Of a stretch of 59,092 nucleotides of DNA, positions 14,432 through 51,216 are shown piece by piece. The notes under the pieces were generated by a model, which saw nothing but the letters and a program-made list of their open reading frames with translations, did no database searches and was not told the origin of the DNA. Origin of the DNA: Polymyxa betae A26-41. Its lineage: Eukaryota; Protista; Endomyxa: Phytomyxea. The translations under genes and the position numbers were made by a program. Numbering within the stretch: the stretch's first letter is position 1; each line of letters begins with the position of its first letter. The stretch is from positions 1-59,092 of the forward strand of contig RBZT01000664.1 of the NCBI GenBank assembly GCA_003693705.1. The letters run 5' to 3'.

Positions 14432-15188
14432 ATGGGTCGGAAGTCAAAGCCGAAGCTGAAACCATTCTGCTATTACTGTGAACGCGTCTTTGACGATGAG
14501 ATGGTTCTGGTTACGCATCAGAAGGCGAAACATTTCAAATGCCATCACTGCCAGAAGAAACTCGGCTCTGCTCACTCGTTAACTGTGCATGTTTTCCAGG
14601 TCCACAAAGAGACGCTCAAAGTGTCTGCATATTTGGTCACCGTTAATTTTTCGATTGATTCTTGCTTCTAGAGTACCTAATGCCAAGAAGGGTCGCGATA
14701 GCCTGGAACTCGGCATCTTCGGTATGCAGAATATTCCTCCAGACGTCTTGGCCCAGAAGCAAACCGAACAGTTTGGTGGCCAGCAACCGCCTGCCAAAAA
14801 ACTTAGAAAAGAAGACGAAGCTCCGAACTCTGAATCTGCTCTATCTCCCACTCTAGATGCTGTGGCTCTCACATCGGCGTCGGCTCCTGGAGAGCTTCCA
14901 GCCGTTAATAACGCTGCGTATGCTGTCCATCCATACGCTGGGTACATTCCACCGGCGGCTCCATGGCCTTCGGTTATGCCGACGGTCGTCCCTCCAACCG
15001 CGGCCGAACCCGTTGAGCAAGTTCTCATCTACGACGATGAGAATTTCTCAGTAGAAGAGAAGCGCGCTATTCTTGCCAAGTACAAATCCCAGAATGCCGA
15101 AGCAGCTCTAGACCGCCACGTCAACTCGCTACAGGAGTCGATTCAAGAGCGTCTAAGGAGCTTACAAGCGGAGGGAGCTACTGTGTAA
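14432..15188 (+). CDS. BuGZ/ZNF207/SUF4-like double C2H2 zinc-finger protein
   Basis: [49 protein letters not shown] / [18 protein letters not shown], and C-terminal [15 protein letters not shown]. Confidence 0.93.
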
Positions 15189-15541
15189 ACCAAATTATCA
15201 TAAATATAAATTTTATTTCATTCCTTTAAGAATGGCACTTCGTTGCTTCTGTTAGGGGTCTGAAAGCATTATCGGTCATCTGCAAATTCATGTCGTTGAT
15301 TTTGCAGTTCAAACTGAGAAGGCCAACCACAGCCAAAACAGAAGTAATCCTTCTGTTCTAGTGTTATGTTTGCAAGATTCTAACTAGATAGCCCTGAATT
15401 GCATCGTAGACCAGCTCCATCATGAAGCGAGAAATGATGAGTACGGTGCCATGAAGTGAACAGACAGTGCCAGTTTTTTTATAGGGCCGCTGTCATCAGG
15501 CTCGTCGATCCTGGGCATCGAAGTCGGAGATCATCCAGCTT

Positions 15542-17827
15542 ATGTGGGATGTCCTTCTTCTCTTGATCGTGGTTATCGGTATCGTATTCATCTTGATGAC
15601 GCTCATTAGCCTATGGTCATGTCTCCGCACGCACCGATACAATAAGAAGAATTCCACTCTGGATTCCCATGCGGCATTCGAATCATCGGTGGAAAAGGCG
15701 ATTCGCGTGATCGGGACCGTCAGGTATGTTAGCCGATGATCGCTACAGTGAACTGAGTGTGAACAGAGGCGATCTGGAGTCGAGCCTGTCGTTATCGCTG
15801 CTGCCGCTTTGTTTCCGGCGACGAGAGATCAAGCGGCAGATCGCCGCCCTAAGAGAGGTGGAAGCGCTGTTAGCAGACCCCACCCCATTACATATGCCAG
15901 ATGTATTGCAGGTGAGCCGGACCCCAGCACCCCAGCACCGTCACATTCATAATGTATCGTAGGCTGTTCATAGTGGTGATATCCTGGCCGATAAGGACAT
16001 CGAGGCATGGCTGTCCTACGAGCTGGCCAACCGGTCGCAGATGATCGACAAGTGGCTTGTCAACCGGGAGCAATTTCTGCAATCAGAAGCCCAGAGGAAG
16101 CATCTGAGCCGGTCCCCGTCGATCATCTCCATGCGAGATTCGACGCAAATGTCTACTCATCTGGAGATGATAGGGTCCTGGGACTTCGACGTCTTCAGCC
16201 TTGTCGATCAAGGAAAAGAAGAGGTCGACTGCTTCCAAAATTCTAAGAAGATTGCTCACATTAGCGCAGCTGCCACTGGCCGCTGTCGGATTCTGCTTGT
16301 TTCTGAAACACGATTTGTTTAACAAGCTGAATCTGGATATGGACACAGTCGAAACGCTGATGGCCATGATCGATGATTCGTACACCAAGAATCCGTATCA
16401 CTGCAATTTACATGGCGCTGAAGTCGCCCATACGATCTCGTACATGCTGATGTCGGGTCAGTATGCCCTAATAGCAGTCTGTTTGCTGACAGAAACGCGA
16501 ATTCAGGCGGCTTTTATCATCTGTTGAAACCGACCGACGTCTGTGCCATGATTCTGAGCGCTTTGTGCCATGATATTGCACATCCTGGTCAGACGAATCA
16601 CTATCATATTGCAACACAATCAGAGCTTGCACTCCGATATAATAACATTGCGGTACTGTGCTCAGACTTTTCTCGTCTGTTTTAACAAGCCTTCATTTTT
16701 CATTCATCAAACCTTGTTGGTCAAGTTCTCATGCTTTTCCAGCATTGTTGTAAATGCTTGTATTCGTTCTTCGATTTTTTTTAAGCTATGGATCCAGGTT
16801 TTAGAGAATTTCCACGCTGCATTCACAAGGAAACTATTACGGAAACCGGAAGCGAATATCTTCTCAAAACTCGACGGCCAGGCAGTCAAGGGTAGACGAG
16901 CCATCGTAGTCGTTGTGGTTGCAACCAGGATAACACGCTTGTTCTAGAGGTGGATGAGCTGCTAATTTCCGTCATACTGGCCACCGATATGAGCACGAAC
17001 TTCGAATGCTGCGCCAAATTCAGGAGATCGCAGGCGTCGGCCAGCAGCACTCGCCGTGGAAGCAATTCACGGTCATCGTATGAAGTGACAACCGGAAAAT
17101 CCTCCCTCGTTCTTAAGCGAATATCAGATCGATTGATCCGGTTGACGTTAACGCCATGCTGGCCCACAGGGAAAGTTTCTTCACCATGATACAGATGTGC
17201 ATCAAATGTGCCGATATCTCCCATTGCGTCAAGAAATGGGACATCCATAAACGATTCACGGTAGCGATCATGGATTACGCATATGAAAGAAAGCAACTGA
17301 CCAGAGGCGTTTGCATGCAGGATATGATTGCTGAGGAATTCTACATTCAGGGCGACCTGGAGCGAGAGGCGAGCATCCCGATCTCGCCCTACATGGATCG
17401 GTATGCCCTGAACAATATCGCCAAAAATCAGGTCCGATTCCAATTTGCGGCATTGAACTTGTAGTTACCCATTCTTTTGCATAGATCGGATTCTTCCAGT
17501 TTCTAGTGCAGCCGGTAATCAGCGCTCAAATCGCTAAATGCTTTTAATCATTGTGTCATATAGGCGTGGCAGACCTGGCTGTCGCTGTGTCCTGTTCCTG
17601 GAGCTGAGACCAATCTTGTGTCGAACCTGAAGGAATGGGAGCGTCTGGCTGTCGTGTGGAACGCAACGCATAGCACGCCGGAACCGGTTCAGCACGCTCA
17701 CAGCATGTGTAAGGCGAATACGGCGGCGCAATTCCTGATCGTCGCCGACCATCGCAAAAGCCAGTCGCTGTCGGAGGTAAAGATCCTTCCCTGCCCAGAA
17801 ACGACCCCAATATTAGATAAAGAGTGA
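15542..17827 (+). CDS. 3',5'-cyclic nucleotide phosphodiesterase (class I) with N-terminal transmembrane anchor
   Basis: Motifs WDFDVF, NPYHCNLHGAEVAH, ALCHDIAHPGQTN, VLENFH, ILATDM, IKCADISH, EEFYIQGDLE, SPYMDR, QIGF. The N-terminus is hydrophobic (VLLLLIVVIGIVFILMTLISLW). Confidence 0.93.
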
Positions 17828-17911
17828 TATCGATTTGGCCCGAACGAGGACAGTACCGACTTTGTCCTTTATACAGTATTTAATTGAGCAAGGTAGCAAT
17901 CTGCTCTGAGG

Positions 17912-18577
17912 CTATTCCCGCTCACGTTTGCGACTGCCGCTGGATTCGCGATCATCTCGTCGCTTTTTCGAATGCTCTTCGGGATCCCTCCTGCGTTCAT
18001 GTTTTCGTTTTCGTTTCTTCTCTTTCCTTTTCTTTTCTTCCTTCTCGTGCTTTTTGAGGCTTTTTCTACGTCTCCGACGTTCTTTACTATCGCTAGTGCT
18101 GGAATCGCTTAGCGAATCGAGACCATCCGAATCGTCCAAATCAACAGGCTTGGATAGGTCGGAGTTGAGAAAGTTTCTGCACTGGAATGTGAAATGCCCA
18201 TCCTAAGTACGTTAAAATCAGTATAAACATTGTCCCGTTCTGATAAACGGACCACGATATCATGACGATCCGTTCGAGGGACAACATTACCTCATTGCAT
18301 TTCTTGCAAGAGCCGCGCTTGGGACCTGACGAAGACGATACCATTCTGGTCATGGATCGCAGACGCTCTCTCTCTGCTTCGAGCGTTAACAAGGACGAAC
18401 GGTCGTCGCTAGGAAGCCGATCGCGGCCGATGGTGTCCTATCTGGATCGATCAGCTGAAATGGTGTGGGCGGCAGCATCTGCCAATGGCCTACCCATATC
18501 GCATGCGTCTCCAGGGCTCTAGATCCTTCAATACGGTTATCTGGAGGCATGGGAACGCGACCGGCCGTAGCAGGCAT
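17912..18577 (-). CDS. CAX-interacting protein 4 / SREK1IP1-like zinc-knuckle protein
   Basis: MPATAGRVPMPPDNR N-terminus, spliced RGSCKKCNEVGHFTFQCRNF CCHC knuckle, and an S/D then K/R/E-rich tail. Confidence 0.85.
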
Positions 18578-19658
18578 GCTTATGGACAATGATCTAGCAA
18601 CGGGAACTGCGTGGTTCTGCCTACTTCTGATGACCGAGACCAGATTGAGAAATATAGCGATATGATAAAACCAAGGAGAGAGGTAATACTTATTACAGTA
18701 CGGTACTTAAGAACTCAGAGTTACATTGACGTTACAAATAAAGTGATGCTGGGCTTTTGGATGTTCTCAATAATGAGGTTAACGGACCGTTCCTCTATCA
18801 TTATGTTCATTGTTCGATGACTCCTTGGTATCGATCGCCCTGACGGCAAATGGATATGCTAACTGAAAAAGCGCTGTCAAACAGAAAGCCCCTTTACAAA
18901 GTTTGAATCTTTGTTAAACATCCTTTTTCTGTGGATGACGATCGTGGCAATCGGAAGCGTTAAGCCAACATTATAGAGACTCATTAAAGCTCGTGGTAGC
19001 GGGACAAGACAATGAGCGATGTTGCGGGAGCTGAGAAGTTATACTTTATATTCTTGATTCAGACAGACAGGCATGTCTTGTCCTTTTATGGGGCACACGA
19101 GCCATTTCTGGAATTCTTGGCAATTTGAGCCTACGACGATGACAGCATTTGTCAGCAACCCAATGATGCTGCCTTTCCAGGCTTTTCAAACTATTGTAGC
19201 TACAGCAGCATTTAATAATGATTTCGAGCCAAGATTTTGGCATTCGGGCCTCTAGGCTGGAAAATTTGCATCTACGTTAGCTGAGTGCTGAAGGAATCTG
19301 GGCGCTGTCGTTAATGTTTGGGATTGTTGATAGATGAATAAATGACAGAATCGAACCGGGAAATACACGATAGTCGATAGGTGACTCCAAGGACGCCGTT
19401 TTGCGCATAAGCGAATATCGCACAGTTAGTTGCACTGGTCATGTAAAAACTCGTCTGTTGCACTTAATATAATCACACTCAAGGGAGTATTACATAGACC
19501 AATATCAAGGTCAGCGTTTCCAGTGAGAAGCCCCCAGCAGTGACGTGGCCTGTAACGAGAGGGCTGCGCCATGATACCACAGGCATCTGCCCTCTATATA
19601 GTGATTGGACCCCGATCATTCTTCAAATCGCTCTGTATCTGGCATTAATATCGCTGCT

Positions 19659-21064
<1,406 letters not shown>

Positions 21065-21166
21065 CTCTTTTAAAGTGTCGTTAATATATGCAACGAAGCT
21101 TTACATTATGGAAGATTGACTTTATATTGCAATAGTATATGTCGTATGTGCGTAGGAGAAAGAGTA

Positions 21167-24265
<3,099 letters not shown>

Positions 24266-45641: not shown

Positions 45642-48600
45642 TTATTGTTTGCATCTGTCTTTCCATTCCTCAATCCTCTCTTGCAACTCAACATCTAAAA
45701 AAAAAATAGATTAGCACACTCAAACCAATCATATTCCTACTTGGGAGGAGCATTTCAAGAGTCAAAGGCTCACGACAAAATGGATCTGATCTTGAGGATA
45801 AGAGATGTCGGCAAATGACGGCTCGATCCATGGTCACCCCCGAGCTTGGCAAAATAACTGGATCTTCCATAAGGGTATTGAGGATCGGATCCAGAAATTC
45901 ATCGGGAACATCTCCAAGCTCTACAGCGTTAAATGAGTATAGATGTCATTCAGGTGAAACCACGAATACCTTCTCGCATGTTCTTTTGCTGCTCGCACAG
46001 AGCGACAAGCTCATCAAAGTACTTTTCGAGATCTGTAAGAAAATGGGGATACCAGGGGTCGGAATGGTCGATCAGGGACTCCGATTGTCGTAATATCTGT
46101 AAGCAATTCGGGAATAGATCAGGCCTGAACGATTGCTCGTCGGAAACAACTGCCTGTGACACAGTTAGCACTTGGGCCTTCATGGATAGAAATAAATACC
46201 AAGTTGAATTGATGGTACGGGCTCAGATTTACATACAGCTGTCCGAATGCCTTCAGCCAGTTAGTTGGCACGAACCCCAATGTAGCAAGAGCCTCCCGCT
46301 CGGCGACAGGTATGATATCCACTAGTTTAGCCATATAATGAGAGATCATCTGTGCTATTCGTTCCACCATCTCTGGTCTCATCAAAATCATCTGAACGCC
46401 TACAGAGGATTCAGCACATAGTTGGAAGCAGAGCATTATTCGTTACATGGGAATGAGGCAAGATTCAAAAGCGTCCTAAGAGTTTCGTTTGAAAGCGTCG
46501 TAACAATCCGCAAATGGCGGCGAATTGGACCCGAGTTTCTAGCCTACAGCTCATTAGAAATTTCGCAATAGTGATAGCAAACCAGCAATTACATCATTGC
46601 TACGACCGGTTTCGTAGAACTGTTCCGACTTCAGGAGAACTTCGTCCATGACGAACACCATATCGGATACCAGACAATGAATGAATTGCAGCGCCTCATC
46701 ATGATTGTTTTTGCTGAAAACTAATGTTAATTTGATGACAGAGTTCAGAAGTCAAAAGAAGCGATACAAAAAAGGCGGAGATTTTATGACGAGGATAAAC
46801 TTCAAAACAACTTGCGCGAAAAATTGGTAAACATACCAGTAATGAGAGAGTGTATGTTTGTGAGTGTCAGACAGGATCACATAATTGATGACAAGCTCCA
46901 GCAGGTTCCGTATCTATAAAAGCACAATATTAACAAGGTAAAACACACCGGTAGCTGGAGAAACTCACATTGAATTTGTCGTAAAACTGAGAAGTCGAGC
47001 CACTATGTTCTGCCAGAATATAGTGACGAATGAGTGCAGGCAGCAGGCGATCGACCATGAAACTTAACGATGATGAGAACAAAGATATTGCAAAAAATGC
47101 TGAACTTACCGATCAGTGGTGATCAAAGTGTTAAAGCGTTGAGACCCAGGACCGTGTGATGTGGGAATCGGTGCCAAACCGCACAGTACTTCAACGAACT
47201 TCGATCGAAGATGCGGGTTCCTTACGTAATCTGGACTACAAAAACTTAATAAAGCAAAACAAACTTTGGCAACATTGCAAATAACAACATTGCAAATAAA
47301 CTCGAATCAGGCAAGAAGTAACTGAGGAATGCAAAAAAAATCAAACAAGCAGCAAACCTGGCGATTAACGAGACAAACAGGCGTAGAATGAAGGCACAGT
47401 GATGATCTTCCGTAAATTCAGGATTGCTTGCCGGCGGCAAAGCGGCCTCTAACGCAGCGCAATCATTTTCACAAAGGAACAGGCAGAAGGCAGCCATGTC
47501 TTCGAGAAAATACTCCGGAATCATAGCAAATTCTTTTGGGCAGGGCTCCGGTAAAGGAAATGCAGGACCGCCAATCAGTATCAAAACGAATCGTGCGCTA
47601 AGACCGTAAAACGCAAGCGTGGTTCTCAGCATGATGGGGTCGAGCAATTCCACAGCCATGGTAAGCTTCATTTTAAGTATAGAAGAAAACTGCGGATTAG
47701 ACCGATTAGAACCTGCCAAGATTGATCAGTCAACGGTGAAGAGCAAAGCTAGTAGCTGCCTAAAAATATATTGACACTACAAAAGCCCAAAAACAGCAAA
47801 GAGCGCAAACACCGACCAGAGCTTTGAATTGTTTGAACGAGTGAGCTGTATCTGGAGCAGGTTTGAATAACGCCCAGATGAAGAGCGTGCATGGTGAGAA
47901 AGAACCATTCACTATGCAGATCGACACCAAAGCTTCCGGTGACTGCATTCGGATAGATCGGAATTGCAGGCAACGTTTCCGTCCATGGGCCCGGACGAAC
48001 TGGCTGCATAAGCTGCATAAAAGTATGATCCGGCGGGTGCGACTGTCGCACTTGCTCTTGCGATTCGCAATCGCTGCACAGATCAAAGGTTGCAGGACAG
48101 TTGATGCAAACAAACCGGATTCTGAAAGAATCTTACATAAGCACAAAAAACGCAGAGTTAAAAAAACAGAGTGGAGGGAATTTCAGATCCTGCAAACATC
48201 GCAAACCTACAAATGGAAAGAAAAATGACAAACAGGAGATTTGATGAGTTACCCTCGAATAGGCGAAACATTACAGGCTTTGCAGCGCGTACCTTCGTGA
48301 ACGACCAATTCCTGCTACAATCAGCAAACAGAAATCTGAAGAGGAAGGAATGACTACCTGATCAATTGGTGCCTCGCTGAGGAGCTCGGGAATTGCCATG
48401 TGCAGGGTTCGTTTCCAGGGACTGCAAGTGATCATGCGCCTGATTTTCAACATTACATGATGAAGATGGTCGTGATTGTCGGGATGCTCGCGTTGTATAT
48501 GTTCGTGCAGATTGGAGTGAACAGAATCGACATTGTTGACTAACGGTTTAAATTAAATCACAAGATGGTGGACAAAGCAACATTACTGGAGCAGATAGGA

Positions 48601-50440
48601 CACCTTAATGGAGAGTGATTTTCGTGATGAGCAACAATCACGTGAGATCGAAGCTCAGATTCCGAGAAACTGGTTGTTACAGGATTTGTACGACATTGCC
48701 GAAAAGGGCATTGGTACGTTGTTGGAGGTTGCGTTGGGTGTCCCAAAGTCCTCATATACATCTCGTGATCGCACTGCTTACCATTCAGGAATTGAGAGGC
48801 TAGCACAACAGTTAAGCAGACCTTCTCACATAAGTCGAAGTCTTGACAGTGGATGCATTTGTATCTGATTCCTTGAATGCACCGCGATCGACATAGATCG
48901 CCTATATACAGATTAAGCATAAAAACTCACATAAAGACGTTTGCATCGTCCTACAAATTATGCCATAATGCGAGTCGTTGATAACCGTTCGAAAAAAATT
49001 TTGATCAGAATCCGATTGTGGAACACCTCGCCTGTTTTCCATTATTTCTTGGACCTAAAAGAATAATGTTGATAAAAGCGAAGAATGCTCAAATTACAAT
49101 AAAAGCACAAACTTCTGAGAGCGGAGCATAGATCCTGGTCTCGTTCTCTCCTAAATCCAATCGCGAGCGTGACATAAAAAAGTCAGGCTTAATTTTGTCG
49201 GCTTCAACTTTGAGCACATTTAGGGCAATATTGGTCATCAGGACGCAAACGCTCATAAGAAACTCGTCTGCGCAAGAATTAGACACGACATGAGGCCGAT
49301 ATGAACAAGTACTTGTCGAGCCAGCCCGATTCCTGGAGCGTAGACGTGCACGACCCCAGTTGCCGTGCAGGATGCAAGCGATCCACGCTAACAATGATGA
49401 GCGACAAACGCCATCCTCAGACAGCATTTCTCGCCAGATACTCTCCAGAATCGAATGCACTCTATAGCCATTCAGAATGAATGGTTTCAGGAAAAAGAGA
49501 GCAAAAGGGAGATAGAATTTGTGATAAAAATTGAGCAGAATAATTCGCAACAGAATAGAGAATAAAAAAGCAATCCGTGAAAAAGTGCAATATGCAATGA
49601 CAATAACCTGTCAAGTTTGTGCCGAAGATTGGTGGTATTGATGAGGATATGTTGCTCAGACATTGAGTCGGCTTGAGCGAATACCGCGTCAGCAACCGAG
49701 AAATCGCGTTCTGTTAGAGTCGACAGGCGAAGAAAGACGCCCATGATACTGTCGAATTCAAAATTCGGGCCATTAATCCAGGACGTGATGAAATCAGGAA
49801 GCGTTGAGAGAGTCTGCAGTACCCGCCGGCTACATAAAAGCAGACGACGAAGTCCTCGGAGCTGATCCTGATATGTACTGCTTAACAGATTCTCTTTTCG
49901 AATGGCGTTAACCAAAGTATTAACAACGATATTGACAGCGTCGCGAATCTCTTCAGTCGTCATCGAATTGAAAAGAGCGGATAAGAACACATCGTTAGCC
50001 GGTGTGATAGGCTCGTCGTCGCCTTCTGGCTTCACCAATGCCTTAACAGAGCGGTTATTAGCGCGACGATCTAGACAGAGCCAATCACAGAATGTCTGCG
50101 ATCCAAGCTGCCTGGCATCCGACATCGGAATCAGCTCAGGGCGGATGATAATCAGCTTCGCGTATCTCAACAAGATGCGGGCAAGCTGGTGGCATTCAAC
50201 GCGAGCGCTGGCGAAGCAGCCCTGGAGGAAATCGAAAGGGTCGGGGTCGCCCAGCCGATCGACGATAAAGGCGTCGATATTGTCGAATGACATACGGCGG
50301 GTGCGACCTTCAGTAACACGGTCCCATGATCGCCAATAGTCATCACTAGAGTAATCTAAAGGGAGCTGCAACAGACCGCGTAGGAGGGCATCTTCGTCAG
50401 CCGATGATGGAGACGATATCGTCGACGTCGGCAAATCCAT
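45642..50440 (-). CDS. Ubiquitin conjugation factor E4 (UFD2/UBE4-like U-box ligase) with internal ZZ and Di19-type zinc fingers
   Basis: UFD2 core motifs ([61 protein letters not shown]) and C-terminal U-box [44 protein letters not shown]. Confidence 0.92.
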
Positions 50441-51216
50441 ATGGATTTGCCTGATTGGGGCGTCGGCGACTCCCGGCACAGGCGGCCGACGAGATGTCAC
50501 TCGAGGACGATCAACTGGGATATGATATGCCCCAGGCAGAAACGAATGAAATTTGAAAATTAATTTTCGCACTATTTTTAGTGCCGCTCTGCGAACAGTC
50601 GAACACGTCTTTGGAATTCTTCGCCCGCTCATCCTTTGTGCTTCTTCGTATTTCTCCAACTGCAACGTTTTCATGGGTACTATCTATGCCCAACACCACA
50701 TGCGCCTGTCCAAGTGCAAGACATGGACGGCAATAGCATGCAGAATTTCAATCTCAGCACAGACTATAAATCATGATAGGGTAATTTGCTGCAAATGAAT
50801 TCCGAGACAGTAAAACCCTTTCAGTTTCTCAAGAACATAGGATTATATGATACATCACCATCGAATGACAGTTTTTCTGTCCGAAATGAAAGCTGTCCAC
50901 AGCATAAAACTCACAATCAAAGTTCGCACTTTACTGATGATCATTTCTTGTCTTTGCTGGACACAATAAACGCGTGCTTTGGAATAGTTTGCGTTTGCTG
51001 AGTGAGGTATAAAGTTGCAAACTGCTTCATCAGTTGCAGGGTGCGCGACCTACAAGGCTGCGCGTGCTGTCTTATTGTAACGGAAGGCAGCACTGCTTCG
51101 TGTTACCGGTAAACTGACATCGATTTAACTTCGCGCAATATTGCTTTTGGATCTAAAATCGTCTTAAGCAGACTCGTCACGATCGGTCGAGGCGAATCGT
51201 CGGGGCGACTCCAATC

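Follow-up and report, generated by a model that had tools for sequence, protein, structure and literature searches.

Does the Polymyxa betae genome encode a UFD2-type ubiquitin ligase with a zinc-finger receptor built into its core, and if so, what might that receptor read? Polymyxa betae is a root-parasitic protist, a phytomyxid rhizarian, and the UFD2 proteins known so far extend ubiquitin chains in general, on substrates handed over by Cdc48 and partner ligases; a subfamily with its own substrate receptor may choose its own targets. The sequence-only reading of contig RBZT01000664.1 (the window, the whole stretch of 59,092 nucleotides analysed) had proposed such a protein, with a KCMF1-like ZZ-Di19 unit and a second ZZ finger inside the core, and had inferred a single-chain E4 ligase that reads N-degrons, possibly a component of a lineage-specific pathway. 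The assembly that holds the contig comprises 1,001 contigs and 27,085,946 bp (PMC6328671).

The gene, the second and non-canonical UFD2 gene of this genome, occupies 45645..50674 on the minus strand (as do all features of the gene given below), with 18-19 exons and a product of about 1180-1256 aa. Its in-frame ATGs lie at 50674, 50632 and 50440; deep RNA contigs start at 50533-50593, which favours ATG 50440, with the start remaining uncertain. Exon 1 (49608..50674) encodes an N-terminal helical region that is 35% identical to the ortholog P0198 from residue 93 on, and returned no match in a Pfam search. RNA-seq bore out the manually spliced exons: single transcript contigs of 3650, 3718, and 3681 nt (runs X5, X7, and X8; two studies) cover the gene from exon 1 to the U-box with zero base differences, each joining the Ufd2 core, every zinc-finger exon and the U-box in one spliced contig, which excludes exon skipping or a split into separate genes. 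The joints of the transcript contigs give fifteen introns (GT-AG in 15/15), and two further GT-AG introns (49268-49312 and 49462-49607) follow from contig arithmetic; together the 17 account for exactly 3718 nt of the transcript record, in one open frame. A strain ~96% alike (X1, from a third study) has identical joints across ZZ2 and the core, and of its coding changes 18 are silent and 10 are replacements (~78% replacement expected by chance), with no replacement at a zinc ligand. The predicted last intron (45695..45740; 46 nt, GT-AG) is read through in contigs of all four runs, contig assemblies being apt to drop rare forms; if it is retained, a hydrophobic tail with a terminal Cys would take the place of the last U-box helix (45645-45694), and the spliced tail matches orthologs. 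For searches and folds we took exons one by one or natural homologs (P0198, P0074, and L017), and joined exons served only for the frame check.

We found that the zinc fingers do lie inside a UFD2 core, as had been claimed. Five exons match Ufd2P_core (PF10408) in order in exon-wise Pfam searches, at positions 51-147 upstream of the insert and 161-361 after it. The first part of the core (49113..49461, with the 45-nt intron 49268-49312 within) ends at the ETRI motif (49142-49131); the second (45970..47913; exons 9-17; Pfam positions 161 to ~583) begins with SEWFFLT at 47913; and a C-terminal U-box follows (45742..45918; Pfam positions 1-56, E 1.7e-22), its last helix depending on the intron that the contigs retain. 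Comparison with yeast Ufd2 places the insert at a short loop near residues 368-383, which the module replaces. The protein thus shares Ufd2P_core and the C-terminal U-box with Ufd2p, UBE4B, and UBE4A, but differs from them in its ~270-residue ZZ[DZB]-ZZ insert, which breaks the core that is uninterrupted in canonical members, in falling into a separate clade, and in coexisting with a canonical UFD2. The latter, a separate gene for which the earlier reading had advised a search, is present on contig C873 and groups with canonical proteins on the core/U-box tree. Given the interrupted core and the separate clade, we assign the protein to a Ufd2/UBE4 subfamily and not to the canonical orthologs; the ortholog matches yeast Ufd2 at E 3e-45 by sequence and at E 1e-17 by fold.

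Between ETRI and SEWFFLT, ZZ1, the Di19/DZB finger and ZZ2 all occur at the minus-strand places originally described. Exon-wise Pfam searches returned ZZ over the cut-off (E 2.8e-7), and zf-Di19 (E 0.0017) and ZZ2 (E 0.0067), both split by introns, under it; PF05605 was above the cut-off in homolog P0033. The first part of ZZ1 (48771..48970; exons 4-6) contains six Cys and the pocket residues. Here the earlier span holds for the six Cys (48970-48771) and needs one refinement at its end, which had been set at the sixth Cys: the two His ligands lie downstream of the DZB, at 48474-48459, in a last part of ZZ1 (48442..48474; invariant H122/H127) that also contributes a closing beta strand (129-132). 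The DZB double C2H2 finger, recognised by Pfam, alignment and model, lies at 48484..48716 (exons 6-7), and ZZ2 at 48010..48299 (exons 8-9), with complete zinc ligands and a degenerate N-terminus pocket. In an alignment of 14 homologs the sixth Cys and the DZB are separated by a 20-24-residue linker that lacks a His pair, and the His pair after the DZB is invariant and followed by a strand. An AlphaFold2 model of residues 412-690 of P0198 (pLDDT 78, pTM 0.73) predicts the three fingers as a single compact unit. The whole p62 ZZ (126-169) aligns to model residues 12-133 (rmsd 1.5 Å over 44 residues), residues 58-120 superpose on the KCMF1 DZB (76-138; Z 9.4, rmsd 1.6 Å), and residues 164-228 form the second ZZ; the small size of the domain keeps the ZZ Z-scores low (3-6). 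By alignment and predicted fold, ZZ1 is therefore a split domain, with the DZB nested before its last two His ligands.

This arrangement does not match the KCMF1 architecture that had been read from a ZZ followed by Di19. The KCMF1 DZB begins only after a complete ZZ (bioRxiv 10.1101/2024.12.18.629163), and since the DZB here lies within ZZ1 there is no tandem; a plain KCMF1 fusion is ruled out by the His pair after the DZB and by the ortholog model. Among solved structures, KCMF1 and p62 come closest to the module, and superposition of the whole module on KCMF1 is poor (rmsd ~11 Å). Like KCMF1, which acts as ZZ-DZB receptor in the UBR4/SIFI complex, and plant DI19, the protein combines a ZZ with a Di19-type double finger; unlike them, it has the nested DZB, a second ZZ, a fusion to a U-box ligase and, in a search that lacked a positive control, no Di19_C match. 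The module probably works like KCMF1 without being a KCMF1.

About 20 homologs carry the module with identical layout, two of them from a EukProt transcriptome set labelled Nonionella stella (a foraminiferan) and the remainder from metagenome contigs, several of which come from one sample and are nearly identical, so that the counts overstate independence. Single-ORF homologs show the same domain order. P0198 is 32-81% identical exon by exon and is among the top matches for every exon except 11 and 12, and a search with exon 10 recovered a 59%-identical metatranscriptome protein as well as P0033, which has the whole layout in one ORF. On a tree built from C-terminal core and U-box columns only (LG+G4, quick search, SH-aLRT support), 12 ZZ-bearing rows and five fragments form one clade (SH-aLRT 100), and none of the full-length canonical rows has a ZZ motif. 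Four of the five fragments lack the insert region because they are incomplete; P0081 still holds the end of ZZ2, and P0085 is P0077's downstream ORF. Across branches of 0.4-1.3 changes per site, no zinc ligand varies and the ZZ1 pocket is kept. The subfamily is conserved and distinct within the Ufd2/U-box family; its same-layout homologs and their clade rule out a species-specific accident in Polymyxa betae, and what had been suspected to be lineage-specific belongs to a conserved protist group. Its range is likely rhizarian, on two named points, one of them possibly a contaminant. No named Plasmodiophora or Spongospora homolog was among the matches of our word-limited search, which does not amount to absence, and the ESM Atlas returned canonical Ufd2 or generic ZZ clusters only. 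The fifth fragment (L018/P0002), also a member of the clade, shows no ZZ2 in the stretch of its called protein that precedes the second core part, which loss, an intron or a mis-call would explain. Neighbours of the metagenomic homologs include a CHCH gene upstream (L019, L021), a mitochondrial carrier downstream (L019, L020) and NOG1 nearby (L021, L022).

In p62, whichever residue stands at the N-terminus, its alpha-amino group is held by D129 and D149 and the first peptide bond by D147 (PMC6098011); its side chain is read by N132 (PMC6098011; PMC6197226), and an Asp to Asn change at position 129 lowers binding ~30-fold (PMC6098011); in KCMF1, D29/D31 are required for N-degron binding (PMC12286842). 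ZZ1 of the Polymyxa betae protein keeps the equivalents of p62 D129, R139, D147, and D149, and of KCMF1 D10/D29/D31. Among the homologs, D129 is kept in 12/14, R139 in 14/14, D147 in 13/14, and D149 in 14/14; all three Asp are found in the Polymyxa betae gene and in 11 of the 14, and two homologs have Asn at position 129. ZZ2 has K, T, and D at positions 129, 147, and 149, and not one of 18 homologs has a ZZ2 with all three Asp. The earlier observation that ZZ1 keeps its acidic positions and that ZZ2 has lost two thus holds for this gene and describes the family. This conservation supports, and does not prove, a grip of ZZ1 on free N-termini. It does not carry the further claim that Arg degrons are read through these acids, as the Asp trio binds any N-terminal residue and the side-chain reader N132 is replaced by Arg in Polymyxa betae and in 14/14 homologs, a substitution that makes Arg specificity doubtful. 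The residue at this position in KCMF1 is Leu, and KCMF1 still reads basic N-termini (10.1101/2024.12.18.629163; PMC12286842), so Arg132 is not decisive. The p62 ZZ further differs in being free of an inserted domain, and PB1, LIR, and UBA are missing here.

We give about an even chance to the reading that the protein is a single-chain U-box ligase that selects substrates by their free N-terminus via ZZ1 and ubiquitylates them via its U-box. The three Asp of ZZ1 would clamp a substrate by its free alpha-amino group and first peptide bond, and a side-chain preference unlike that of p62, possibly for acidic or oxidised residues and not Arg, would come from the inserted DZB and from the Arg that is invariant at p62 position 132; ZZ2 would give structural support or serve as a further docking finger. 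The core would hold the substrate where the U-box with its E2 can reach it and add or extend ubiquitin chains. A single chain would do the work of UBR4 plus KCMF1 in animals, or of PRT1 in plants, with the canonical UFD2 on C873 retaining the Cdc48-linked role. What the data show directly is the expression of the gene, its domain order, its conservation and clade, and a predicted fold; the ligand, the partners and action as an E3 or an E4 are inferences. Transcript continuity, the site of the insert at the yeast Ufd2 loop, the shared layout and single clade of the homologs beside a canonical paralog, the ZZ1 pocket conserved where that of ZZ2 is not, and the nearness of KCMF1 and p62 with their N-terminus-binding Asp residues all argue for this reading. 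There is also a precedent in Arabidopsis PRT1 (RING-RING-ZZ), a single-chain ZZ and RING N-recognin (PMC11668491) that combines N-terminus reading by a ZZ with a ligase domain that binds an E2, albeit with RING in place of the Ufd2 core/U-box, aromatic specificity and no DZB; and two ATE1-like loci are present in the genome (contigs C914 and C889). Against it, Asp at the pocket positions is common in ZZ domains, including an ADA2 ZZ of the same genome that has D129, R132, and D149; the change of Asn132 to Arg removes the side-chain reader of p62; the Asn at position 129 in two homologs is the change that weakened p62; the DZB is placed differently from that of KCMF1; the folds are predicted for orthologs and not for the Polymyxa betae protein itself; and near-duplicates inflate the homolog counts.

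A bolder form of this proposal, which we hold only tentatively and consider doubtful as a whole, is that a UFD2 subfamily of ancient rhizarian standing became a single-chain N-recognin independently of UBR4-KCMF1 and PRT1, and that its split ZZ, with a nested DZB and an Arg-lined pocket, would read N-termini not favoured by p62 and KCMF1 (e.g. acidic or oxidised-Cys ones, without prior arginylation).

Alternatively, in a minority explanation that we take seriously, the module would not read N-termini but offer a docking surface to proteins in general, whether to an internal peptide, to a modified protein or to one fixed partner, like the ZZ domains of MIB1 or ADA2. Other ZZ matches in this small genome belong to two ADA2 genes (contigs C375 and C455), one SWIM-RING-ZZ protein and a large gene on C674, and Arg132 is common to both ADA2 domains; the prediction of the three fingers as one compact unit (pTM 0.73) would suit a docking surface, and the sole DZB ligand reported, as cited in 10.1101/2024.12.18.629163, is a mono-ADP-ribosylated histone. 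Against such a surface, ZZ1 keeps its pocket acids across a deep clade in which ZZ2 loses them, and only one of the four other ZZ matches keeps all three Asp.

We think it unlikely, though worth weighing, that the protein substitutes for KCMF1/DI19, its ZZ-DZB docking on UBR4 DOC1 and its U-box being supplied as the priming ligase of a UBR4 complex. UBR4, one of the partners to be looked for, is represented by a C-terminal half with DOC1 (contig C709), and three UBR-box loci are present; the separate KCMF1 also sought was not found, nor was DI19, with limited sensitivity for small exons that a small, intron-rich KCMF1 could have escaped. Both the ZZ and the C2H2 fingers of KCMF1 bind DOC1 (PMC12286842), and UBR4 complexes shuffle these domains among subunits (10.1101/2024.12.18.629163). 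The C-terminal helix of KCMF1 is, however, its UBR4 anchor (PMC12286842), and here the module runs directly into the Ufd2 core, with no match to Di19_C (PF14571) in the genome (a search without positive control); KCMF1 R20, one UBR4-binding residue, is not conserved, and the ZZ-DZB geometry differs. The PF24079 profile gave no match either. UBR4 is possibly split in two genes: the C709 gene (~130200-137450) covers DOC1 to the C-terminus and seems to begin mid-protein, and the large C674 gene (~14600-22400) resembles the UBR4 N-terminal half and ends in a ZZ with all three Asp, a resemblance only, as it has no PDB or Pfam match.

It is very improbable that the protein works as an ordinary UFD2 duplicate in which the insert is carried along as a tolerated passenger or has a purely structural part. 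The insert sits in a variable loop, and the DZB exon of X1 carries 4 amino-acid changes and 0 silent ones (a short stretch from one contig at depth ~4), but those changes hit no zinc ligand, the ligands and pocket persist over the long branches given above, and in homologs a ZZ1 Cys is the target of a probable intein. An artefact of manual splicing, or of two overlapping genes, can be put aside, as full-length spliced contigs occur in three runs and single-ORF homologs have the same order.

Should the N-terminus-reading ligase be borne out, it would be a third route, after UBR4-KCMF1 and PRT1, that couples N-terminus recognition to ubiquitin transfer; we know of no study of the N-degron system in the supergroup of Rhizaria. 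Prior annotation of the architecture had been named as grounds for setting the proposal aside, and literature searches on a ZZ in Ufd2, on Plasmodiophora Ufd2, on Ufd2 inteins and on N-degrons in Rhizaria, outside subscription journals, found no description. The domains of the module are already visible in automatic Pfam annotation of homologs, so the subfamily is unreported in the searchable literature and not hidden; a protist UFD2 subfamily with a built-in zinc-finger module is apparently undescribed. A split ZZ with a nested domain is likewise a zinc-finger topology for which the searched literature yielded no report, and the size of the module (~270 residues) and its high predicted folding confidence make its specificity directly testable.

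Some homologs are further interrupted by probable inteins. In P0077 (~764-1338) one lies inside ZZ1, directly before the third zinc-ligand Cys, with a Cys start, a TPDH block, a Gln end before Cys and a weak LAGLIDADG match (E 0.08); remnants of it stand at the N-termini of P0076 and P0078, and it is absent from the Polymyxa betae gene. A second lies in the Ufd2 core of P0072 (~1091-1547) and at the same site in P0073, P0076, and P0078, with a Cys start, a TPDH block, an Asn end before Cys and TIGR01445 matches below the cut-off (E 0.03-0.18). Both are found in some homologs, and the host of these sequences seems to be an intein-rich eukaryote.
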